The notes under the pieces: generated by a model
Seen by the model: the letters and a program-made list of their open reading frames with translations, nothing else
Told to the model about the DNA's origin: nothing
The model's database searches: none
In this document: positions 201 to 16,256 of the stretch, piece after piece
How the letters are laid out: each line of letters begins with the position of its first letter
Position numbering within the stretch: the stretch's first letter is position 1
Made by a program: the position numbers and the translations under genes
Assembly (NCBI GenBank): GCA_900088475.1
Contig: FLMG01004519.1
Coordinates: forward strand, 1-32,182
DNA from: Hyphochytrium catenoides
Taxonomy: Eukaryota > Protista > Hyphochytriomycota
Direction of reading: 5' to 3'
DNA: 32,182 bases

Positions 201-3200
201 ATGGCTCCGAAAGCCAGGCGCAAAGCTTCTGGCGCTAGCGCGACCACTTTGCAAGGGGCACGAGCCGCGACGATATTGGAGGAGATCTCTAGTTCTGGCG
301 GGGCTCCTCCTGTGCTTATCTCTGAGCTCTACGCCTTACTGCACAAAGAGCTAGGGGAAAGAAAAGTTATTGACCCAGAGTATTTGGCGGCAGTAGCTCC
401 AAGAGCTTTAGAAACCTCTAAAAGTTGTAAACGAGGGCATCCAGGCAGGATACCAACTTATGGGTCCTACATTGATTGTATGGTCAAAGAGAACACGGAG
501 CCTCCCCCGCTTCTCTCTGCCTCAGCAGCTAGAGAAGTGGCGAGCGAGTATGGTTCAATCCTTATCAAGACCACCCAGACTAGCCTTCAGCTACTGTCAC
601 AAGGCGTACAGGAAGAAGGGAGGCTTAAAGAAGTCATACCGCTTCTTTTGCGCGTGGCATGTCTTTCTGTTTATGCTCTGGACCGCATCCGGAAAGCTCT
701 GAACTGCGGAGAGCTGGCACTGGAGAAGATGGAGTACCAATGCCTAACGAAGTGTGTCGAACATGATGAGGTAAGCCAGGAGTGTCCTTCTTCAGTATAT
801 TTCCAGTGCCATGGCAAACGCCACCCAAAGACCAGAGAAGGGAGAGGCCAAGGGCTGAGCGATGAAAAGGAAACTGAGATGCCAAGACGAAACCCAGTGA
901 CGACCACTAACAGAGAATATGCTATGCTAGTGTTTATCTTGCTGATTGGGCATAGGCTTCGTACTAACACTGGCTGTTGCCCTTCCGTGTTACGGCTATA
1001 GTACTACCTAGGCTGCGAACTCCTGGTGCGACTGAGACACCGACTTACGGAATATCACCATAGTGTGACAGGAAGCCAGAAGCAAGGCGAAGGAGACGGG
1101 CTCAGTAAGCCGCTGGAAATTCTCAGCAAGCTGCCACAAGCAGAGACCTTCCTTCCAGCAACCTTCTCCCGGCTCTGCTGTGGCTACTTGCTTTACTTTA
1201 CCCGGATGCTAGCTTTGGGGCCGCTTACGACGGCGGGCGTTAAAGTAGGCATCCTGGTGTTGATCTCTCGGCCTTGCTGTAGCCGCGTCCTGATTATCTT
1301 CCTTAGGTACTATCACGAGATGTGGTAGATCTCTTCGTGGAACATAGCCAGAGTCTCGCTAAAAGCGGTGAGAAGTCTGCTGCCAAGACTTACCTTGATA
1401 AGATGTTCAAGATTTTATGGAGTGCAGCTTCGGCTGCCACAGCGGCGAAGGTACATATTCCGAGTTTTTTCTGGGGACTGCTCTGTTTCGATTTGCTGCT
1501 TCACTGTCAATACCTCGTAGCTAACACGTCACAAATAGGCAGATGGTATAGACCCATTAGAGCTGCGGCTCGCAGCCTTTCGAATACTAGGCCATCAACA
1601 GACCAACACCTTCCCTTACATCCTGGAGCAGGTATAGTTCCCTTTCGCCCAGGCTTCTTTGCGTATTACTTTGCCTAAGCCTTTCATTTCCTCATCTATT
1701 GCTCCTCGCTAGGCACATCGATGCGGGATTCATGCCGAAAAGCTAATAAAGCGGACACCAGATCGCGAATCAATCATTCAGTTCTATAGAGCTGTTCTTG
1801 GTCTTGCTGTAAGGGACGGAGAGCTGGACTTGGAGAATATTCCTCCTATGAAAGAGAGAAGATGGAAAAATAATGTGAAGGCGACTGTGACTACCTTTAT
1901 TGGGTTTGCTGTTCAGGTACTGCAGGCCGATATTAAACGTCCTGACCCTGGCTTCATGCCCCATTAACCCTTGTCTTTGATACAGACACAATGCGCTCCC
2001 CAAGCCTTTAACGTCCTGGAGCATTTATCCTCCCTCTTGCTGAAAAGTGTAGATCTAGAGGAAGCCCTTGCAGTCCTACTAGCAGTTGAAGATTATATTC
2101 GCGTCCCTGCAAGGAGTTCCTCTTCGTCTATCATACCTTTCTTCTGTAAGTTCCTCCTTAGCGCCCTCCAGTTTGCAACAGAAAGAGCAATGACTCCGAG
2201 TCATCTTTCTCTCGACCAACACTCAAAGACTGCTACAAAGCAGTCCTCTTTTATCAACAATTACTGCTCAAAGATCCTCGATCAGCTCATCGTATGCTCC
2301 GGCATGGAGTCCGTGGCTAGCGCCATTCTTTCGCCTGGAAGTTCTTTGACCGCCCTGCCCAGAAGACTAACAAGGGTTGTCGCGGTCTGGAGAAACGTGA
2401 ACCCTTCCGTGTTTCCTAAACAAAATTCCGAAAAGCTCATTGCCTGGTAAGTCCTGTTACCCTTTACTTTCCTCCCCTGGCCCTTTTTGATAAACCTGAC
2501 TGGTCTCCTACCTCTCCTTCGTGCATGCCCGTCCACTCTTGGTGTTTCCTGACCTAACGGGATTGACTCTTTCATCTAACTTCCATGGGGCGATCTTGCT
2601 TGCCTGCTCATCGACACTGCCTGTGCAGCATCAATAGGCTGGCATTGAGGTTGGAAGACGCAGAACCATCTCAGGTTATGGCTGCTGTGGACAGTATATC
2701 CTCACTTTATCGAGCCAAGGGACAGCTTCTTCACTGGCTTTTGCCGCTCTCAGATGCATCTCTTTATCTGGAGATAGTGCAAGCTTTCCAGAAGTCCTTC
2801 GACGCTCTCGCGAAGTCTTTGACTGTTGCATGTAAGAGTGAAGATGGTGAAAAGAATGGTGAGGGAGACGCGGGCGCCACCCAATCTTCTCTTCTTACCG
2901 AGGCCAATGCCCTTACTGCCGCCAGCTACAATGCTGGGCTTTCTTTCTACAAGCAGAAGGACTTCGAGCAGGCGTCAGCCCTTCTTTCAATATCTTTAAG
3001 GGTTGTTGAGGAATTCTTGCTGGAGAGACTAGGACAGGATAAGACGCTAGAGCAAAGATCTCCTCTTCTTACGATCGCTACTGAGCAAAATCTGCCCTTG
3101 CGCTACAATGTGCTCTCGGCGTGCCATCGCGAATGCGGAGATTGGAAGCAAGCTATGCGAGCTATGGAAGAGGCAGTCTACTGGGATCAGTTACTATCTG

Positions 3201-6200
3201 GAAATAAACTTGACGGAAACAGCAGTTCCTCAGAACACTTGCAGGCATTTGTCTCCTACCATCTGCGGTATGCGCAGGCTTCGTCTTCCGAGTCTACACA
3301 ATCGGCGTGTTCGAGATCTCGGGTCACCATGCCGCGGCCGCAATGCAACAAAAGCGCTAGGCTGCAATGGTTTGTCCAAATTTTCCACAGTTACCTCCCT
3401 TCTGTCGGGGTCGAGAGCCTCGCATCTCGACTACAAGACGTTGCGAGGCAAGCTCAGCAGGAGGAGATTAAGAGAAGAGCACAAACTCAGAACTTTTGCC
3501 CGCTTGAGCCCTTGCCCTCCCTCTTTCGCCTATATAGCAGTCAATATCAACGTTTGCAGAGACAATATCCAGGATGGAGAAACTCCAGGGGACAAACTGC
3601 TCTCCTCCTAACAGCTACGGAAGCTCAGCTAACGCTTCTGCAACTGGTCCAGGAAGCAGGAACTATGACATCAATGGCAACGCTGCATTTGAGAGTAGCA
3701 CAGTCCCTCTTCCAGAGTGTCTCAGCTGCCCTCCATTGTGGAGAGTGTGAAGCTAGCCTAGCGCTGATTGCAGACAAGATCCTGAGTGAGACGTCTGCCG
3801 CCGTAGAGATGGCTAATGACACCTCTCCAGCGAACTCTGAAGAAGTAATAGCGTTAGCCCTGTTGATAGATTGTTGGATGCGCTTCGTTTCTCTGTCCAC
3901 GTTGCAAAAAGAAGAGAGTGATAGAGACGACCTCCGTCCGAGTGTGTCCAGAGCTTTGGACTGTCTTACGTCACTTCTACGGCAGAAGCAGAAAGAAGAC
4001 CGCAGTCCAGCCTTCCCTGCCGACCTCTCCTACACCGTGGAAGAGTTATGGGAAATCCTCGCTTCCGTGGCTAATCTTCTTCAGCTGTATGGCTTTACTG
4101 ATCTAACGGTAAGTAACCTCTTCTTTCTGGAGAGACTTTCTTAGGTAAACCAGGAGCTTGCCTTACTGTTTAGCGAGAGGATTCATCCATTACTGTCACC
4201 ACAACTCATTGAAGACATATGCGTTTGTATCTCCAGGAGCGGTTCTTACTGGATCTCGAAAGTCTGCCGGCAAGGAACGCGCCATGCAGTGGCCTTCTGT
4301 GCCAAGCCGTCAGCGCCCTCCCTACATTGGAACAAGCTGTAAAGGGGGGACACGACTTTCCTGTTACTGTTACAGCTAAGACTTTCAGCGTCATAGAGAA
4401 AGGGCCAAGCTCATTGGCTTCCTGCAGTCATCATGACCTGGTTCAGACATTCCGTAGGACCTTGCTTTGTCCAGCCTCTTTGACACCGAATACACTTCTG
4501 GATGCTGCTTCATCATTCCCAGGAGCCACGGAGAAGCTCACCTCTCGTCTGGAGGCTTTGCTTTTACTGTCACGCACTAAGAGGTCAAAAGAAGAGCAAT
4601 TCCTGGCATTACTAACTGGCGTTAAGCTCGCGGCTGTCGTTTTCCCGTTATCTCTCCTCTCTCGCGTGGAGCTTGAGGACATCCTTGGGCTAAAGGACAC
4701 AGAAGATGCTAGACAGGAGAATGGCGATGATGATGAAGTGATAGAACTATTAGAAGACTTGCACTTAAGTGAAGAAGAATGTAAGGAGACGGATCGTGCC
4801 CTAGACGGACAGCCTGTTGACCTGAAGGGAACCAGGAAGGCACGGAAGGAAGATACCGCAGCGATGGGGCATCTCACCCTACGGCTGTACTCCAGGATTC
4901 TTAACAATGGGTTCACCAGTAGCAGTTTAAAGCTCCTCCACCTCCTTTTGGATCTCCTGCTGGAGGTGTCAGCCCTCTGCAAAGTATATGGTCACTGCCT
5001 GAGGTTCGTACTCTTTCCTCGTCATTGCTCAGCGCCTTTTGAATTCATTTCCTAATCAGTACGAGCTATCATATCTCTCCTGCAATGCTTTACTTCTCAG
5101 GGCCATAACCTACTTGAAATGGGGGCTGTTCCTTTCAAGACAAGCGACGCTCCTCTACTACGAGCTACAATTTTGTCTTCATCTATGCGACATCTATTGT
5201 CAGAGCTGTGAAGCGAAGGAGCAAAGAATCGCTATTCACCTCCATTCCCTTATTAGAGATATCTGGGAGAAGCTCCGACGGAAACCGTTAGGTTCATTTC
5301 TGTCCGCTTCTTTGCTCTACAAACTCCGGATAGAGGTGGCAATCAGTCGTTTGGTGAACGGTCCCCAAGAGCAGCGCCGGACGTGCCAAGCGCTTCGCTC
5401 GTGGGTGGCAAGTGAGCTGCAGAGGCAGAGCGACCACTTTCCGCCGAAAGGAGGAATAGATCAAAAACACTCAAATAATGCGCTTAAGCAGCTACACCTA
5501 CGTTCTTTTTTGGACTTGGCAGAAGCAGAGGCGTGTCTCAAAGAGGCGGAGGATGACGGGGAACGACTGCCCGGAATAGCTGATAAGAAGCGTCTTCGTT
5601 TAGTCGACACGGCGCAGCGTATACTCGAAGATGTATGCCAGAAGTGGGAATCGCTGGCTCAAGATGTCAAACTTCAAGCCTATAGCCTGCTCTGCTATTT
5701 TGGCCGCATAGACAGCAGCAGAAAGGAGAGCATCACTCGTTTAGTCCCTTGGGGTGGCTCTTCATGCTCTCTTGTCCGCTCTTTGGTAATCAAGACAGTA
5801 TACCAAAGCTTAGCTGAGAGTCTCTTCCGGCCAAACGCCGCAGCTTCAACCCGAACCCTAACTGCCCTCCTCCACGCAAGCATTGGAGTCTCGTACCGGC
5901 TGACGAAAGAGTACCATGCCTATTACCATTCCTCCTCTTCGGAGGTGGTAGCTCTGAGACGTCTTTCCAATACCTCTACCTCCCCTGCCGCTTCTCTCCC
6001 TACAGCGGGAAGAACGAAAGGCAACACCACAGCCACTTTCCAGGTGGAAAGAGGGAATGAGAATGTCGGTATTTGCTGGGAAAAGGACGCAATAGAGGAA
6101 TTCAGTCAAGTGATAGACAAAGTCCCATCCAGCTGGACAGTTCTTTCTCTGTCTCTCTCCCGCGATGGCTTGATTGTCTCTAGGGCCCAGGTGAGAGTGC

Positions 6201-8451
6201 ACTACCCTTCTCTCCGACCCAGATCTTTTTCTTGCTTACCCCGTTCCTATCTGCTAACTCGATCAATCAGCGCTTCAAGCAACCACTGGTACGGTTGCTC
6301 TCTAATCCTGAGAATGGAGGTAACTCAGTCCACAAAATGCTAGCAGAGTTCCAAGAGCTGATGGAGAGCAATAGGTAGTACTGTCTAGTTCGCTGTGTAT
6401 AATAGGTCCAACTGTTGGCTGAGTATTGCTTGTTATGGTTGCTTTAGAATGTCTCTGGAGCGTTGCACTATGGCTGAGGCAGCGACCTGGAAAGCTAAGG
6501 ATAAACTCGCCTGGTGGAAGACTCGAGAAGCACTTGATAACCAGCTTAAAGACCTGCTTTCCCTGGTCGAGGTGGTGTTTCTCTTGATATCATTATTTAT
6601 CCTTCCCTTGCTTTGACAGTTGATTATTGTAGGCGAAGGTATTTGGCGTGTGGCATGTTTTGTTAATGCCTGATCCTGCATTAGACGCTGCTATTGAACG
6701 CCAATGGCACTTCCTGCTGCCTGCACTGCGTGAAGGGTTGCGCAAGGAGATGAGAACTTTAGATCACAGTGAGGTAGGTGCCAAAACTTGGAATGCATAT
6801 CCACCTCATCAGGCTCTGGACTGTGAAAAAGTCTGCTCCATGATACTCCAAGGGTTTGGGAGACCCTGCCTCTAGTGTCATCTCTATTTTTCTGTCCTAC
6901 TTCTCAGTCTAGAGGTACTTACTAGGTCTTCTCATCACCGTGCTCGTCCATAAAGGCCGACGATGCAGTTATTCTAGAGCTCCTGCGCCTCTTTACCTGC
7001 CAACACGTTGCCGGGAGAATAAACGCAGCGGAGCTTGCGGATGGCGTGTCACAAGTCCTTTCACCTTATTTTGCCACTGACACGTCATCCCCCGCGCAAG
7101 TTTCTGGACTTCAAAGGCTTCATACCTACATAATGGCAGAGATCAACCGGGCAAAGTCATCTTCTTTTACTTGCCCTTCCTCTCCATCGTCTCTTTCTAC
7201 CAGCTTAGGGTCTTCTGCGGCTCCCCTTCCTGATTTTTCAAAGTTAAAGGTGGTAGAGCTAAAGGCGGAACTAGCAGCCCGCGGTCTGCCAACCAATGAC
7301 CGCAAGGCGGTCTTGGTGCAGCGGTTGATAGACTTTGAGTTGAAAAAGCAAAAGAGCAGTCTGGAGGATAATCAGGAAGACGTAAAAACAGACCACAACG
7401 AGACTGAGGATAACCCTAGCGATGCCCAGCTCATTCTAGTGATAGATTCGGAACTCCATTCATTTCCTTGGGAGAACTTGCCCTGCCTGCGAAATACAGC
7501 GGTCTCTCGTCTGCCCAGCATCTCATTTCTCCAAGCAGCTAGTCAGCGACTTGCTCTAGCTAAACCCTTCAGGGGTCTTTGGAAGAACTCTGCGCTTATC
7601 CTCAATCCCAGTGGAGAACTAAAAGGCACGGAGGAATCGCTTCAGGGAATGGTTAGACAGGTCGAAAAGGAAGGCGGACAGGCATGGATTGGAACTGCGC
7701 CTTCCGCTACAGATTACATGTAAGTCTCTGTTTCTTTCTGTTTGCTTCTTATGTGTGAACAACGGCCTTCGCGGTTGCTTATTTGGGTTGTTCCATCTGA
7801 TCCTTGCCGCCATTACTCGTCCTCTATTATGTCCACAGGGACTTGTTGCAAGATTCTTCCTTATTTATTTATTGCGGACATGGTGGTGGAGAGCGTTACC
7901 TCCATCGAGATAAGCTTAGAGAGCTGAGACATGGGGCTGTGACTGTGCTCATGGGGTGCAGCAGCGGTAAACTCAAGGTACAGGACGAGAATCTCATCAC
8001 TTCAACCCCTTGCTTATGTGTGAGCTCACCTAAAAAGTGCCGTTGAGTAGCTTTTATCAGTCTGTTCACTTAGTCTTACGCCGTTCTTCCCTGCTGCTTT
8101 ACTAAGGCTGAATTTGGTTACGAACCATGGAGCGTGGTTGTCTCACACTTAGTGGCTGGTGCTCCAGCTGTCATAGCAAACCTGTGGGATGTTACAGATA
8201 AGGTAACATCAAGCATCCACTTTCTTGAGCTTGTTCTCACCCTTTCCTCCTGCAAGAGGTGTCGCTTATTTTACTGACACACTCTGTTCAAATGACAGGA
8301 TATCGATAAGTTCTCTCTGTCTTTATTGTGTGGACCGCAAGGCAGTCACAAGACACTTATTGGTCGACTATTGTTTGCTCGGGACCAATGCCGCTTGAGA
8401 TATTTGAACGGCTGTTCTCCCGTCTACTACGGGTTGCCCATCACTCTATAG
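201..8451 (+). CDS. ESP1: Separase (separin, peptidase C50), multi-exon, with long N-terminal helical region
   Basis: ATG at 201 (MAPKARRKAS). First intron is 771-1001 (GTAAGC...TACTAAC...TAG). Spliced C-terminal exons give the separase motifs WWKTREALDNQLKDLL, LILVIDSELHSFPWENLPCL..VSRLPS and ILNPSGEL..TE. Catalytic His is in YCGHGGG (CAT 7879-7881) and catalytic Cys in LMGCSSG (TGC 7957-7959). Further motifs are ANLWDVTDK|DID (intron 8203-8298) and SPVYYGLP, with TAG at 8449-8451. Middle exon boundaries were not all verified. Confidence 0.93.
7235..7336 (+). other. SAP (SAF-A/B, Acinus, PIAS) DNA-binding motif inside the separase coding exon
   Basis: FSKLKVVELKAELAARGLPTNDRKAVLVQRLIDF fits the SAP consensus (L-x-V-x-E-L-K-x2-L-x2-R-G-L-x4-K-x2-L-x2-R-L). 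It lies in the same open frame as the downstream FPWENLP separase motif. Confidence 0.88.
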
Positions 8452-8571: not shown

Positions 8572-11500
8572 TCAGACAGCTGCTGCGCTAAGCCTGTGGT
8601 GTAGCCAGGCGGCGTACACGCCGAAGTCGTCTGGGCTAGTCGCTAGAGCGCTTAACGACCTCAAGGTTTGGGAACGAGGTTCTGCGTCTAGTGCCTCAAA
8701 AACACGGGAAGAAGAAAGCAAAAGTAGCCAAGAGAGCATTGGTTCAATGGCATAACGCTCCTCAATCATCTTCGCAATCTCCTTGACCAGAGGAGAAAGA
8801 AGGGAGAGAGGTAGAGCAAAAGGGCAGGGCCCAGTCTCTTTTAAGAGAGCACCAAGAAGCTCTCTATCTAGAGGCTGATCCCTCAAGACAAGTGCGTAGG
8901 CTTTCTCTACCTTTCCCGAATGCAGTGCCCTCCACAGCTTAGGGTTCTTTGCAGCTAAGAAGTGAACGGGATTCGTCTTCTCTCTCCCATTCAAGGCCTT
9001 GACTCCAGTCTCACTCGTCCTATCCTTAGAGACTTCTTCTTTTTCTCCGTGCCTCTTGATCGGTTCAGCTCGTTTAAGCTTGCCTTTCCTACTTAAAGAG
9101 CCGCGCGTAGACTGACCGGACTGTCCCTTATTCTTCATAAACCCAGTTCTGTTACCACGTTTCGCTTTCATTTGTGCTGCTATGCCTGGTTGCTTGTGCG
9201 TTGGCAAGTTCATCTCACCCTCGTCATCCGTGGTGGTATGAGGAGCCATAGAAGAGTCGACCATGCTCGTGGCTCGCCCTCGGTGGTTTGTACGCCCTTG
9301 CATCGCCTCCGCAGTCGTTTCGTGGTCGGGAATTGAAGCGCTTCTTAATTTGCGTTCATGTAAGGTTCTTCCGTCTCTTCGTGCTGCTTCTAAATTGCCA
9401 GTGTCATCTGCGTTTTCTTTGGCAACGGCAGTGTTGCTATTCTCTTCCAAAACTCGGGTTTGGCTCTTTCGCTTGAGCTTCTCTGGTGCTGTCTTGGCCT
9501 TAGCTATACTTGGCAAGCTTGAAGTGCCCTCAAACTCTTCCCGATGCTTCTCATCATCCGGAGACTTTGAGGTCGACCTATCCTCTTGATTGAGAGCTGT
9601 GCCCGATAACTCGTTTTCTCCCTTTTCATCATCCTGTGTGATGCCTGTGACGGACGGCCTTTTGACCTCTACAGCTTTCCCATTGTCTACTTCATAGAGA
9701 GGAGATGCTTTGATGTCTCCTGGTCCCTCCTTCTGAGGGTCTTTCTTGGAGGAACTCTCCGCTTTCACGCCGCGAACTCTGTCGTCCTTCTTTTTCCCTC
9801 TTTGCTTACTGCTCTGTACCTCTTGTGCGGTTCCTGGCGCGATATTCATATCTCCAGGTTCGGAGAGGACAACGCCAGCGTCTTCCTCATGGTCTCCGGA
9901 GGGGGTGACGTTGGAAGATGTCGCGTCCAAAGGAATACCAGGAGCATCCAGTTCTGACGCTGGAAGTGATGGGCTGATATGGATGGCCCGGGCGGGGATG
10001 GACCCCTCTGAAGGTTGTTTGGGTAAGGTGCCTAGAGGATGTGCTGTGTGAGGTTGTTGCGCCGTAAAGTTGATAGTAATATTGTGTTCTTGGTCCTGGT
10101 CGCTCCTCTCAGGCGATGCCTCATCCCCACTGTGCCCATCCCCCGCAGGCGGAGGTGCGCTCTCGTCTCCAGCATGAGGCTCTAGAGGGCCCTCTACCTC
10201 AGCAGCATCGTCCTTAACGTTCTCCGCGTCATCCTCCGGCTCTAGAGGTGGGGTGGTTGGCAGGGCGCTCTTTTTCGAATCCTTGCTGAGCAGAGCATCA
10301 GCATCGTGGGGTAGAGCGATAAGGATGTGGGGATCCCCAAAGCTAAAGAGCCGGCGCTTCTTCTCTGCCGACTTCCAAGGTTTATCTTCTCTGTCTCTAT
10401 CTTTTTCCTTATCATGTTCAGTTCTCCTTTCCTCCTTTCCCCGTTTCGGAAGGTTTGCACGGCCTCCAGCACTCTTTAGCAGCGTAAAGTTCTCTCCAAT
10501 GGACTGGTGACTCAGGCTCTCGGAAAGTGTTAGGGGTTGAAGAGAGTAGGAGTGTAGAGACTCTTCTAACCAAGCTGCCGCTACTCTCACTGGCGAACTA
10601 GAGTCTCGTTTACCTATGGCAACTGCATCATACAGCCTTATCTGCCGAATAGATTGTTAGTCATAAGGGGCTAAACCGTCAAAACTTAGGCGAGAGTAAA
10701 AGCAACTAAGCAATGATCCTAGAAGGCCACAGCGTGGAGGGATTCCCAGAGACATTGACAACAAGGCAGGAGAGGGGAGCGGCCAAATGTTTGGCCTGTT
10801 AAAGCGAATGCTACAATCTGAGATTGCAGCAAATGCATATAAGCAGAGAATTCAGTTGTTGAAGGGTCCGCCGTTAACTAAGGTGGACTGACGGAATGTA
10901 GACTGGGCAACTTGACTGTTTACCACTTCTCGTTCCCCTTTGAGCTGTTCAATGTGGCTCTTGACTAGTCGCCGGAGCATCTCCAGAGCACCTTTCCTCT
11001 GTCTCCAACGCTTTCCTTCACCTGATCCCTTGCCCGCTATTCCTTGGTATCCCGCACCAAGGAGCTCGAAAACAAACGGTTCCAAAGCCTGCTTCAGTGC
11101 TGAATAACCAAGCTCATCCGCTTCCTGGGCATCCCAGAGGCCATGAGCGACGGTAGAATGAAGAGGGCACAATGTTTCTAAGGCCATAAGCAAACATGGA
11201 AGGCACAGGCCAGGATGGGAAAGAGGACAACAGCGAATAGAGCAAACGTGCTCCCACAGAGTGACACGGGCCCCGCCCCATCCTCTCCCCGCTTGGACGC
11301 ATACCTTTGACAGAGCAAGGAGGCTTCCAATGGCTTCGAAGAGGGGTCCTAACATATTTGACGAGTTGGATTTGATGTGGGCCAGGGCAGGAGGCAGAAA
11401 AAGATCCAAAGAGTGTACAAGGCGCCTTGAATGATTTAGAATAAACGCTTCCTGTCCAGCTTCATTCTCGTTATTGGCTTCATGTTCGTCCGTCCTTTCC

Positions 11501-13688
11501 GTCACTTCCTCCGTCAAACCTTTCAGGGAAGATGGCCCCTTTGTTCGGTCCTTCTTCTCAGAATCCTGGAGTACTGTCGCCTGGAACGGAGACATTGAAC
11601 CATATCGACTCTCTTTTCCTTTTGGTCCCCCAGATCCTGACAGCTTGGCTACTTTTATTCTGTCACATATCTGTTGCGCCTCCCCTAACCCAACCACAGC
11701 CCTAAATTCTCCTCCTTCCTTTGTCTCAAAGAGCTCGTACTCTCCAGGGCAAACCTGAGATAGAGAGATGGAGAGATGTTATAAGACTCGGTACAGACAG
11801 AAAGCAATTCGCACCGCAATAGAGGCGCGGACGAAGCTCAAGGGAATATGGCAGGGATGACAGTCTGCATGTAAAGAAGGCTATGGGCAGCAGAGAAGCA
11901 GCAGAGCCTTTAAGCATAGCTTCCATCGTACACATGAGTGTCGGAAGACTTGCACAAGAAGTAGGATTGGAAGACGGCCTAGGATGACGAGAGCGGCCAA
12001 TAATCTCAAGAGCTGACCTCGTCCATAAGACGCTTTAGCTCGAGAGCCCAGTTATAGGCGGCGCGCTTCACTTCGGAGCTTATCTCAATGGCGATCTGTG
12101 AACGGGCAGGCTGAGGATGTAGAAGAGCCTGGAGACACCAACCCGCTCCCTCCTGAGACTGTGACGAATTCTCTCGGTACCTGGGCAGATAACCGACAAA
12201 TGAGCGAAGGAGGAGAACGAGCTTGACAATTTGAGAGTACCAGTGAACATTTTAAGTTTGACGGTCTAGACATGGAGAGGAAATTAAGAGGACGGTACCC
12301 TGACAGAACCCCAGGTAGGCCTCCACCTACTCTAATTAGAAAGAGCGTATCTATACCTAGCAAGAAGCGGGGAGATCATGGCGTCCAGCACATCCCTCAC
12401 AGCATCCTCTGGTGGCCTCTTGGCCCCAACTGCTTGAGCTTCAATTTGGGGGACCACGTGAAGAGAGAGAAAGGAAAATGCCGTGGCACAGCTCTTTCTG
12501 ATCACCTATAAAGAGAGCGAACCCAGCGGTCAGCAGACACGAGAAGGCAAGAGTTAGTGGACTCAGGCGATGGGGCGACTTTCTGACTGGACACCATTAC
12601 TTTGTGCACAAGAGAGCAGAAAGCTAACCCGCATTTGAACAAGCAAGATGATTGCTGAAAGCAAGCTGAGTTCTCTCTACCTCCTCCTGGTCCCCAACTC
12701 TGCGATGCAAGTATTCGAGGAGACGGTCCAAACACGAAGAGAGGGAGGTGGCCTGCTTCTCTATTAAAAATGATAGGACCTCGACAAACTCTTTACGAGT
12801 GGAGACTTTAGCTGAGTCCTTTAGATGTACATTGAGGTTAGAGGATGTTCTGGATTTCCACTCGGGAATAGGAAAGAGTAGAGACTAGATGGAGGACGTG
12901 GATTGTGCCGCGTGAAAAGTCAGAGAAGAGATAGTAATGGGACCTAAAATAACCCTGAGAGGAAGAGGAAGCCTTAGGTGCACAAGAGGACTGGAAGTGG
13001 GACGTTTTGGGAATCCAGCAGGACGGAAGTGGTATGAGCAGGCACTGTTACCTTCTTCTGCAGCAGCAACTTGACGAAAGGAGCCACTTCTTGAGGCTGG
13101 AGCTGCTTGATGAGCTTTCTATATATTAAGAAAGTAAGTGTCCCATGCTCTGGACGTGAATATAGCCACAAGGGCGAGGACAACATCCACAAGAGATTAG
13201 AAAAGGATGGCAAAAAGCAGAATGCTGCTACCTGAGAGCAATTGCGGCTTGGCCAAGCGTGTCCCTGTCCTCTAAACGTTGCAAGTGAAGTTGAATTCGA
13301 AGATTCCGCTCTTCTTGGCTTTGTCTTGAGGCAGCAAGAGGGTTCTTGGCTTAATGTCAGGGCGAGGCGGAGTCAGAGTCAGGCTAGCCTTGAGAGCTTT
13401 AAGCTTTACTAACCTCGTGTGAAAAGATGTCGCCGAGGGGAGGCTGACCGAAGGGGAGACCGCACCTCGCTGGACGGAGAAAGGGGCATCACTTTCTGTG
13501 TGCTGGAGGCACTTCGCAGTCGTTTGCCTATGTTTGTCGTAGGACCGAGGGTTAAGCCTATCATTACTGTATGGGGTCCAAGGAGCCAAGGTACCAGGAG
13601 AGGCAGGGGGTGTTGAGTCATCCCCTGTAACATCTTCAAGGCTGTCAATGGAGCCGTACAGAGACCGAGGCCGGTTTCGCGGCAGCAT
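8572..13688 (-). CDS. TORTIFOLIA1/SPIRAL2-like microtubule-associated protein (N-terminal HEAT repeats, disordered linker, SPR2-type C-terminal domain); 9 exons, about 1201 aa
   Basis: Phase-consistent GT-AG exons: 13688-13414, 13324-13232, 13118-13052, 12818-12681, 12505-12357, 12180-12018, 11754-11305, 11124-10924, 10641-8572. The spliced protein contains, in order, LQRLEDRDTLGQAAIAL, QPQEVAPFV, STRKEFVEVLSFL, RRVGDQEEVIRKSCATA, ENSSQSQEGAGWCLQAL, WRQRKGALEMLRRL and KRDSSSPVR. These parallel the recalled plant SPR2-family motifs (LxKLxDRDT, RRLxDxDSxVRDAC, EQNKxxQxGAxxCL, WxxRKAAAxxL, RFDKxKPVR). The C-terminal SGKVEKAYALVL..LLGALLKETGP parallels GDxDxAYxEVL..LLxKLMDxTGP. Confidence 0.75.
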
Positions 13689-14577
13689 CCTGGCCACAAG
13701 CAGCCCAGAACCCAACGCAGGCCTACCAGGTGCGAGGGCTATCACGTCACCCCTCTCCGGTCTCTTCCTCTACTCCCTTTCACCTCTACGGGCGGTTCGC
13801 CAATTCAGCGCTACTTCTGAGCTCTCCGCGAGCCCTCAAGTTCCATAGCGGCGCTGTTCTTAGCTTAAAAATCGAGATGCGACTGACCTTCTCGATTGCC
13901 GGTGGGCGGGTGCGGCAGCAGGAGCGTGAGATCTGACGAGCTGACGCCAAGGTTGAAGCTAAATCTCAACCTTTCTTTCTGTCTGTTACTGTACCTCTGC
14001 CCTTAGAGAGGTTAACGGCCAATTGCGAAAGGACACCCCAAGACCAGAGAATGGGTGCGGGGCACATTGTTGACGAAGCCTAACAGAGAAGTAACCACAG
14101 CTTCATGCCTCATGAGCGATGGCGAAGGATGCTCTTGGAAGATTTCCCTGCGTGCCGTCCTATAACCATCCTCTTCTTTGATCTCGGCGATGGCTTGGCC
14201 TCTAGAAGAAACTCTGTGGGCTTAACTCAGAGTGTTGAGGAAGTGGTAACAACAAGACCACATCTCATAGTCTTACTGCTCCTTTAGAAGACTGCTTGGT
14301 CCTCTTCCTCCGCAGTCACGCGCATAGGCAGCTGAGTCTGAGTCTGAGTCAACGTTGACGATTTACAAGGGACAGAAAAACGTATCGTGCTCATTGGCGT
14401 ATCTCATAATCTTTCTTGGGTCCTCTAGGTGCAAGAAGTAGTCTTTCAGTTTAAGGGCCCCAGTTTACACTTTACCCGGAGGCAATTTGTCTTTATTTTA
14501 GCGGTCCAACAGGCGCTCATAGCGGAGCCCCCACCATAAATAGTATGCTAGGCTTGAGAAGACGACAAGCCACAAGG

Positions 14578-16256
14578 TCACTTCCCATCGGCCACTGTCT
14601 TCTTTGACTTCTTCAGGATGTCCTTCACAAACCTGTACAACCGTCAGTCTCTAAGATTTAGGTTATTGGGAAGCCAAGCGCCATACCTGTTTAAGATGTA
14701 GGCAGTTAATCCCCAGACGACATGATGGGCGCCCCTAAAAACTGGGGCACTGTCTTCGCTATATACCCAGTGATTAAGGTCCACTAGCGTCCTGCATAGT
14801 GACATAGAAGAGCGGGGGGATGGGGCCCATCAGGAAATGCGAGATTTTCTCTAGCATCAATTATACTCCCACCGTAAAGGAACTGTGAACCATTCGTCGA
14901 CTTCATCTTTGTTGATGCTGATCTTCAGTTCATTTAGCTCACCAAGGAAGCCGACAACTGGAGTGACTGCTATGCCGGTCAAGGACGTCAGTTCAGTCCA
15001 GTCGCACCTGGCGTCCTCAACTCGGTTAAAAAGTCTCTTTCACAGGAGGTGAGCGGGTTAGAGCGACGGCTACCTTAGGATGCCAAGAACGTCCACTGAG
15101 TCGGCCGGTATGCCAGTCTCCTCCTCCAGCTCTCGCAAGCATGTCTGGATGATAAAGCTATCTTGTTCTCGATCAACCATTCCTCCCGGAAAGCACACCT
15201 CAGACTTGTGCTTCCTGACCTGGTGACGGGGAGTGTGCGCTGAGTTGCCCATGTGAACCGATGCGGAAGATGCAGCAGAGACAAAGAAAGGAAGAAACAG
15301 CGTAGAGGATTGTAAGAGGAACGAACATACCTTTTCAGAACGCTTGGTGAAGAAGACAGCTGGCTCACCATTATAGAAGCATAATGGTAACAGGACGGAA
15401 GCTCGCTGATCCACGGCATTGGTCACTTGTCGCGGCATTCGATTTAGCCTATACTTGATTATCTGCAGATGTTCTGGAGAGAAGCAGACTGTCTCGTCTT
15501 CATTCTTCTGGTCTGCAGACTCTGCGATGCAAGAGGGTCAGCTTTAGACAACTAGAACCTGAAATCTGTAAGCGGTACATACTATTGAGCTTGTGAGCCC
15601 TCCAGGGCTTTAGAGTGGCCTCGAGCTCCTTGAACTTCCCCTCTGCCATAAGTTCGGCGCAACGCTTTAGAGTTTGGTCCCTGTAGGCCCACTCAGCGCT
15701 GATCGTTCGTTACATCTCGCTGGAGGATATTACCATCGTAGTTACCTGTGCCGCAATGCTGAAGCCAGAGCAGGTGCAGTAAAGTTCTGCACTAGGAAGT
15801 CCAAGTCGACATCGGGATCTCTCGATAGCGGTACTAGGAACACATTTAGCTCTGAAGCTCCATCACGTCTCGCATCTACGACAAGAGAAATAAGGTTCAG
15901 ACCACCGATGCTGCAGCAACCTGTACCAAGGATAACCCCATACCATTCTCCACCAAGGGCCCGGGGGGCACCGCGGGAGGAGGATTCACCCCAGAGAAGG
16001 ACCCTGGCGCTGCTGACTGTCCTTCTTTGGCTATCTTCTTTGAGTTCGCTGCCTGTCCTTCTTTGGCTATCTTCTTTGAGTTCCCCTCGTGTTTCTGCCA
16101 AGCAGGGCTGGCTGAAGCTACCGAACCACTGCTATGAAAGAAGCGGAGACTCTGGCTGGTCCGCAGCTGTTTAAGACTTCTCCAAACACGCCTGTCCCAA
16201 CATGTGAGGCTCGATATATATTTTGTCGTTGAGCGGAGGCCTTGACCACGTCTCAT
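14578..16256 (-). CDS. NUDT8: Nudix hydrolase, CoA diphosphatase family (NUDT8/NUDT7/Pcd1-like), probably mitochondrial; 8 exons, about 390 aa
   Basis: Phase-consistent exons: 16256-15944, 15875-15746, 15680-15583, 15521-15331, 15219-15074, 15007-14873, 14791-14687, 14632-14578. It has the CoA motif RASVLLPL..FTKRSEKVRKHKSEVCFPGG, the Nudix box GGMVD..TCLRELEEETGI, and VTPVVGF, DEVDEWFTVPL and VWGLTAYIL. The N-terminus is Arg/Ser-rich (MRRGQGLRST..SLRFFHSS) and there is no PTS1 at the C-terminus (..ADGK*). Confidence 0.88.
16017..16083. repeat. Tandem duplication with 36-bp period in Nudix exon 1
   Basis: CTGTCCTTCTTTGGCTATCTTCTTTGAGTTC is identical at 16017-16047 and 16053-16083, encoding NSKKIAKEGQ twice on the minus strand. 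Confidence 0.95.

Follow-up and report, generated by a model that had tools for sequence, protein, structure and literature searches.

Is SPR2/TOR1 (SPIRAL2/TORTIFOLIA1) confined to plants? The question is raised by a gene of the protist Hyphochytrium catenoides, found in a stretch of 32,182 nucleotides (nt) that is called the window here (contig FLMG01004519.1 of assembly GCA_900088475.1, positions 1 to 32,182). SPR2/TOR1, which binds and stabilises the minus ends of microtubules autonomously, is described as plant-specific, and the role it has there is likened to that of CAMSAP/Patronin (PMC10756542, PMC10980349). The gene in question lies on the minus strand at 13688-8572, in nine predicted exons. 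We consider its product to be probably a divergent SPR2/TOR1 relative in a non-plant protist, with both terminal domains and their order in common with the plant proteins. Our literature search, of incomplete coverage, found nothing on non-plant SPR2 homologues or on SPIRAL2 in connection with stramenopiles.

The clearest signal comes from the C-terminal domain (8572-9009 including the stop codon, approximately residues 1057-1201), which carries the motif GKVEKAYALVL...LLKETGP. When this domain is scanned alone (136-168 amino acids, aa), the best Pfam family is TOR1L1_C (E 2.9e-4 to 5.3e-4), matched over profile positions 11-79 of 134 with 20.6-21.4 bits, below the gathering score of 27.8. The result is weaker when the whole of exon 9 is scanned. 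The only other Pfam family reported for the domain is Utp12 (E 0.03-0.04). In the Atlas feature search, which uses a protein language model, the top cluster is “TORTIFOLIA1/TORL1-2 C-terminal domain” (0.88, with 190 of 256 features shared), and the next clusters are EDC4_C and katanin con80. In the SPR2/TOR1 family this domain is a p80-katanin-like alpha-solenoid of seven helices (8F8N, 8HBR). The structure from Arabidopsis SPR2 (8F8N) has the same fold as the C-terminal domains of katanin p80 and of Ge-1, as the EDC4 protein is also called (PMC10756542).

Structure comparison points the same way. The single-sequence AlphaFold model of the domain is all helical, with a predicted local distance difference test score of 72 and a predicted template modelling (TM) score of 0.60, and is similar to the p80-katanin-like fold that the SPIRAL2 C-terminus adopts. 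Among 350,542 PDB chains, Foldseek places 8hbr, the C-terminal domain of Spiral2, at ranks 1 and 2 (probability 0.96-0.97, E 0.15); 8f8n follows at rank 20. The solved SPIRAL2 C-terminal structure also ranks first in two runs of VIA-align. A shape search of the ESM Atlas with the same model returned just unrelated bacterial helical-repeat proteins with a TM score below 0.45. Against PDB sequences, phmmer with the long open reading frame (ORF) and with the C-terminal domain returned no SPR2 chain, only rows at chance level.

The N-terminal part was searched exon by exon. Exon 4 (12681-12818, or from an alternative acceptor at 12860), which holds HEAT-like units B/C, has TOR1L1_N as its best Pfam family, with an E value of 5e-4 for the 46-aa form and 3.2e-4 for the longer 60-aa form. 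The match covers profile positions 52-95 or 49-95 of 281 and reaches 19.9-20.6 bits, below the gathering score of 43.3. Its position in the profile is collinear if the TOG-like domain starts near residue 97. Exon 8 (10924-11124) contains a HEAT unit with KRWRQRKGALEML and matches a generic HEAT model only (HEAT_EF3_N, E 3e-4). In the Atlas search it falls next to generic HEAT/TOG clusters (0.76), and an XMAP215/CLASP TOG cluster is among these weak neighbours. Exon 2 alone (13232-13324, 30 aa) has no Pfam match, nor has exon 5 (12357-12505), and a Pfam scan of the remaining N-terminal exons, taken singly and too short to score, assigned no family.

The series of SPR2 motifs claimed by the earlier note is present in full and in the order given there. 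The motif DRDT is found at residues 111-114, in exon 2, which encodes the first HEAT-like helix and the LEDRDT loop; exon 3 (13052-13118) encodes the second helix of this first unit. RRVGDQEEVIRKSC spans the junction of exons 4 and 5, with exon 5 opening on VIRKSC and continuing the array. QEGAGWCL follows in exon 6 (12018-12180) and WRQRKGA in exon 8, while KRDSSSPVR opens exon 9 and forms the loop of the last HEAT-like helix-loop-helix (10549-10641), for which AlphaFold2 predicts helices at exon-9 residues 2-10 and 17-31. Counted by eye in the model, the array has approximately seven helix-pair units. It is preceded by a disordered N-terminus of about 90 aa and broken by an acidic low-complexity insertion of about 107 aa (residues 296-402) in exon 7 (11305-11754), after which the exon adds one more HEAT-like unit.

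Seven HEAT repeats are reported to be a unique property of the SPR2 TOG domain (PMC10980349). The loop of the first repeat, LEDRDT, has an arginine (R112), and there is no tryptophan in exons 2-3. This residue presumably corresponds to R56 of Arabidopsis SPR2 (AtSPR2), which would lie in a DRDT of the plant sequence. In SPR2, the loop of HEAT repeat A is Trp-less and has a conserved Arg, R56 in AtSPR2 (PMC10980349).

The two ends of the protein are also physically connected. The last HEAT unit, the linker and the C-terminal domain all lie in exon 9 (8572-10641), a single stop-free exon of 689 codons that ends with the stop codon. The linkage of the last HEAT unit with the C-terminal domain is therefore independent of predicted splicing. 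No other family is known to combine a HEAT/TOG array at the N-terminus with a p80-like C-terminal fold. Katanin p80, EDC4 and UTPs carry WD40 propellers instead. The CLASP, XMAP215 and TOGARAM families carry several TOG domains, and none of them is known to have a p80-like C-terminal domain.

These other families were tried as candidates and rejected. Against katanin p80 and EDC4 stands the lack of any Pfam match to WD40, Katanin_con80 or EDC4_C in any exon at E <= 10. For CLASP/TOGARAM, there is no match to CLASP_N or to XMAP215_CLASP_TOG, the family of the TOG domains of TOGARAM, in any exon. The earlier note would have taken best matches to CLASP/TOGARAM or generic HEAT proteins, with no SPR2 match at the C-terminus, as a refutation; what was found is TOR1L1_C as the best match, with the CLASP/XMAP215 TOG and con80 families unmatched.

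The gene model itself was rebuilt from anchor strings and a three-frame translation of 13800-10500. The nine phase-consistent exons that had been proposed hold up: the joined frame is open over 1201 aa with one terminal stop, the phases agree, all eight introns are GT...AG (89-282 nt) and codon usage fits every exon. Translation is inferred to start at the ATG at 13688, in exon 1 (13414-13688), which encodes residues 1-92 as a Ser/Pro-rich extension. The acceptor at 12860, also in phase, would add 14 residues to exon 4 for a protein of 1215 aa. The long ORF at 8572-10590 reaches further upstream without stops, to an AG acceptor at 10643-10642. Mean intron length in the model is 189 nt; for H. 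catenoides a mean of 208 bp has been reported, together with a diploid genome (PMC5795050).

Coding potential was scored as a codon-usage log-likelihood trained on the other long ORFs of the window. The model frame has the highest score in nine of nine exons, including the short exon 3, where the log-likelihood peaks in this frame. Exons 2-9 reach about +0.2 to +0.6 bits per codon; the introns stay near or below zero. The coding signal of exon 1 is weak (+0.02).

Alleles were compared across DNA contigs of the source organism, and the statements that follow cover the insertions/deletions (indels) and single-nucleotide polymorphisms (SNPs) listed in that comparison. Frame-breaking indels fall in predicted introns (behind 10653, and at 11769, 11774, 11889, 11892, 11930, 12678 and 12880), and one-base indels at 13702 and 13711 are upstream of the ATG. 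The sole exonic indel is an in-frame insertion of 18 nt behind 11457, in the acidic part of exon 7. As for SNPs, 10 of 40 are intronic. Three synonymous and no non-synonymous changes were found in the C-terminal domain, compared with 6 synonymous and 13 non-synonymous in the linker. In the HEAT exons there is one synonymous change besides the conservative E110D of exon 2, and both SNPs of exon 1 are synonymous. Small as the numbers are, such a pattern of variants would be expected of a functional gene whose two ends are folded and whose linker is free. Codon usage and the allelic indel pattern argue against a chance open frame, and we take the gene to be real, nuclear and probably functional, and its owner to be a non-plant protist.

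Two further observations concern exon 7 and the intron that follows it. The 18-nt insertion at 11457 adds six residues to an Asn/Glu-rich segment, is present in contigs of two runs and looks like a length polymorphism between alleles in a low-complexity segment. Intron 7 (11125-11304) is 180 nt long, in frame and stop-free, with a G+C content of 0.57, above that of the other introns. It carries two allelic SNPs, and its retention would add 60 residues between two HEAT units with the frame kept.

The linker (9010-10548, about 510 aa) was expected to be a disordered region of roughly 500 aa, and it agrees with this in length and in having no predicted secondary structure. Its charge is mixed at first, then acidic, with a basic patch near its end. 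Over residues 561-640, each 40 aa contain 12-13 K/R and 10-11 D/E, for a net charge of +2 to +3; an acidic stretch with a net charge of -12 comes next. The sole strongly basic patch, at approximately 8998-9177, has a net charge of +11 over residues 1001-1040, with flanking windows positive to residue 1100, and sits just before the C-terminal domain. In plant SPR2, lattice binding, tubulin binding and minus-end targeting depend on a basic region after the TOG domain and on a central coiled coil, which makes the protein a tetramer (PMC10980349).

Relatives of the gene were searched for widely. In phmmer searches with the C-terminal domain, no genuine relative was found among 1.84 billion protein representatives. 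The one match (P0001), 612 aa long, is the translation of a tandem repeat; it is matched in eight stretches, has no Pfam family and was set aside as a spurious, repeat-driven false positive. Two metagenome scans, one with the C-terminal domain and one with exon 8, found no relatives. Word searches, including one with the stop-free segment of exon 7, intron 7 and exon 8 (candidates of about 170-540 aa), found none either. At 1.84 billion representatives, about 40 bits are needed for an E value of 0.001, and with so high a requirement these blanks are compatible with remote protist homologues.

Several results weigh against kinship with SPR2. All TOR1L1 Pfam matches are below their gathering scores (19.9-20.6 against 43.3 bits and 21.4 against 27.8 bits), and only one of the eight N-terminal exons matches TOR1L1_N. 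This model can cross-match generic HEAT proteins, as a GCN1-like cluster in the Atlas bears the TOR1L1_N label; the exon 4 match therefore means “closest family” and not “member”. Single-exon phmmer searches of PDB sequences with exons 4, 5, 6 and 8 never reached the SPR2 TOG structure 8D00. A heptad scan of the linker gave no coiled-coil candidate, and the single-sequence AlphaFold2 prediction of exon 9 has no secondary structure over residues 33-540, both being weak predictors. The region right after the HEAT array is of mixed charge, not basic. The gene is known from a single genome, with no relatives in any of the searches described above. Finally, a run search for RNA support gave three of six listed runs with the stretch, all of them DNA contigs from one study.

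Weighing these points, we asked what else the gene could be. A lineage-specific HEAT protein, whose C-terminal bundle is a generic or convergent alpha-solenoid of the p80/Ge-1/UTP type without specific SPR2 ancestry, would account for the low scores and the cross-matching, but we judge it unlikely. The two domains each pick the matching half of one family, in the expected order and with collinear positions in the profiles; four methods rank TOR1/SPR2 first for the C-terminal domain; and the HEAT/TOG plus p80-like pairing is not known from any other family. A wrong gene model, with two different genes behind the HEAT exons and the long last exon or with a decaying pseudogene at the locus, has even less in its favour and seems very improbable. 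It can draw on splice sites that rest on GT-AG and motif continuity alone, on the near-zero coding signal of exon 1 and the very short exons 2 and 3, and on a run search that gave DNA contigs and no RNA run. Against it, the frame is open over nine exons and spared by the allelic indels, the variants in the folded parts are synonymous or conservative, and the last HEAT unit and the C-terminal domain share one ORF.

For a family otherwise described from plants only (PMC10756542, PMC10980349), one may suspect that the DNA came from a plant, by contamination or by recent transfer from a streptophyte. We find it hardly credible, given the intron-rich neighbour genes of protist type, the diploid-style allelic variation throughout the contigs and the lack of a close plant match. 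The earlier note had treated a streptophyte host as fatal to its proposal; phmmer with the C-terminal domain retrieved no plant protein from the 1.84 billion representatives. With no relative in the protein representatives or the metagenomes, this is therefore not a plant gene.

This leaves the kinship with SPR2/TOR1 as the reading that we prefer, at a reduced scale. The identity proposed in the earlier note stands insofar as both terminal domains point to that family alone, but “full-length” was too strong a term, as the coiled coil is undetected and the basic region is displaced. The protein is a divergent SPR2/TOR1-like variant and not a full family member, because two features needed by plant SPR2 are missing or displaced. 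Remote homology read from the sequence of a single genome is a lead, not a result.

How such a protein might work can be outlined from its four predicted parts, namely the disordered N-terminus of about 90 aa, the TOG-like array of about seven units, the linker of about 510 aa and the p80-katanin-like C-terminal domain. The HEAT array would bind tubulin or the microtubule lattice via its intra-repeat loops, among them that of repeat 1, with DRDT and no Trp, and that of repeat 6, with the basic KRWRQRK. Electrostatic binding to the lattice could be added by basic patches of the linker, and the C-terminal domain may dock a partner. What the sequence shows is the gene structure, the order of the domains and matches to this one family below threshold; binding to microtubules and any role at their ends are our inference. 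With no coiled coil detected, the protein may be a monomer or oligomerise otherwise, and would not necessarily follow minus ends in the manner of plant SPR2.

A broader proposal, which we offer tentatively and at somewhat less than even chances, is that the SPR2/TOR1 module (a Trp-less TOG domain of seven repeats plus a p80-katanin-like domain) was not a plant invention. It would either predate the split of Archaeplastida and stramenopiles, with loss or divergence elsewhere, or have reached the hyphochytrid ancestor by an ancient transfer from an alga. The form without a coiled coil could then be a minimal or ancestral minus-end regulator. If the homology is true, its occurrence in a heterotrophic stramenopile would make the TOG-plus-p80-like module older or more mobile than the plant-specific view holds. 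A natural variant without a coiled coil would help to ask which parts minus-end recognition needs. It would also be a new candidate in the debate on algal-derived genes of the water-mould lineage.

Other genes of the window were noted in passing. A separase gene converges on the SPR2-like gene and comes very close to the 3' end of the latter; the separase ORF at 7046-7723 on the plus strand has a SAP domain (E 2e-11) directly before Peptidase_C50 (E 4e-23). On the other side, the minus-strand ORF at 15070-15438 holds a NUDIX exon (E 1.4e-8), and the neighbours include a gene for a P450 protein. The NUDIX exon presumably belongs to the Nudix sequence from which the earlier note guessed a stramenopile host; it is too short for a placement of the organism, and Pfam scans of other ORFs of the window yielded no gene suited to that purpose. 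The plus-strand ORF at 165-1001 has a weak match, below threshold, to an IS91-type transposase zinc-binding domain (E 7e-4). This match may be due to chance or to a transposon remnant, and lies near a TPR-containing ORF at 2585-4144.

Compared with known systems, the protein differs from katanin p80 and EDC4 in having a HEAT-like N-terminus and not a WD40 one. Like CLASP, XMAP215 and TOGARAM, it has a HEAT-repeat array, and exon 8 has a motif of the W-x-x-R-K-x-A type that is usual in TOG/HEAT repeats; unlike CLASP and XMAP215, it has a single array in place of several TOG domains. The differences from SPR2 are more numerous. Scores are under the family thresholds, the central coiled coil is undetected, and the basic patch is found before the C-terminal domain and not after the TOG domain. 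The HEAT array has an insertion of about 107 aa and follows an N-terminal extension of about 90 aa, the total length is 1201 aa compared with 864 in AtSPR2 (PMC10756542), and the host is not a plant. On the other hand, the order of domains is the same as in Arabidopsis SPR2/TOR1 and the TOR1-like proteins (PF24714 TOR1L1_N plus PF24713 TOR1L1_C; 8D00, 8F8N, 8HBR), with a HEAT/TOG-like array at the N-terminus, then a long disordered region and a helical domain at the extreme C-terminus. The first-repeat loop contains an Arg (DRDT) and lacks Trp, a possible parallel to SPR2. Both halves of the Pfam family are the best family matches, and the C-terminal structure of SPR2 is the top structural match.

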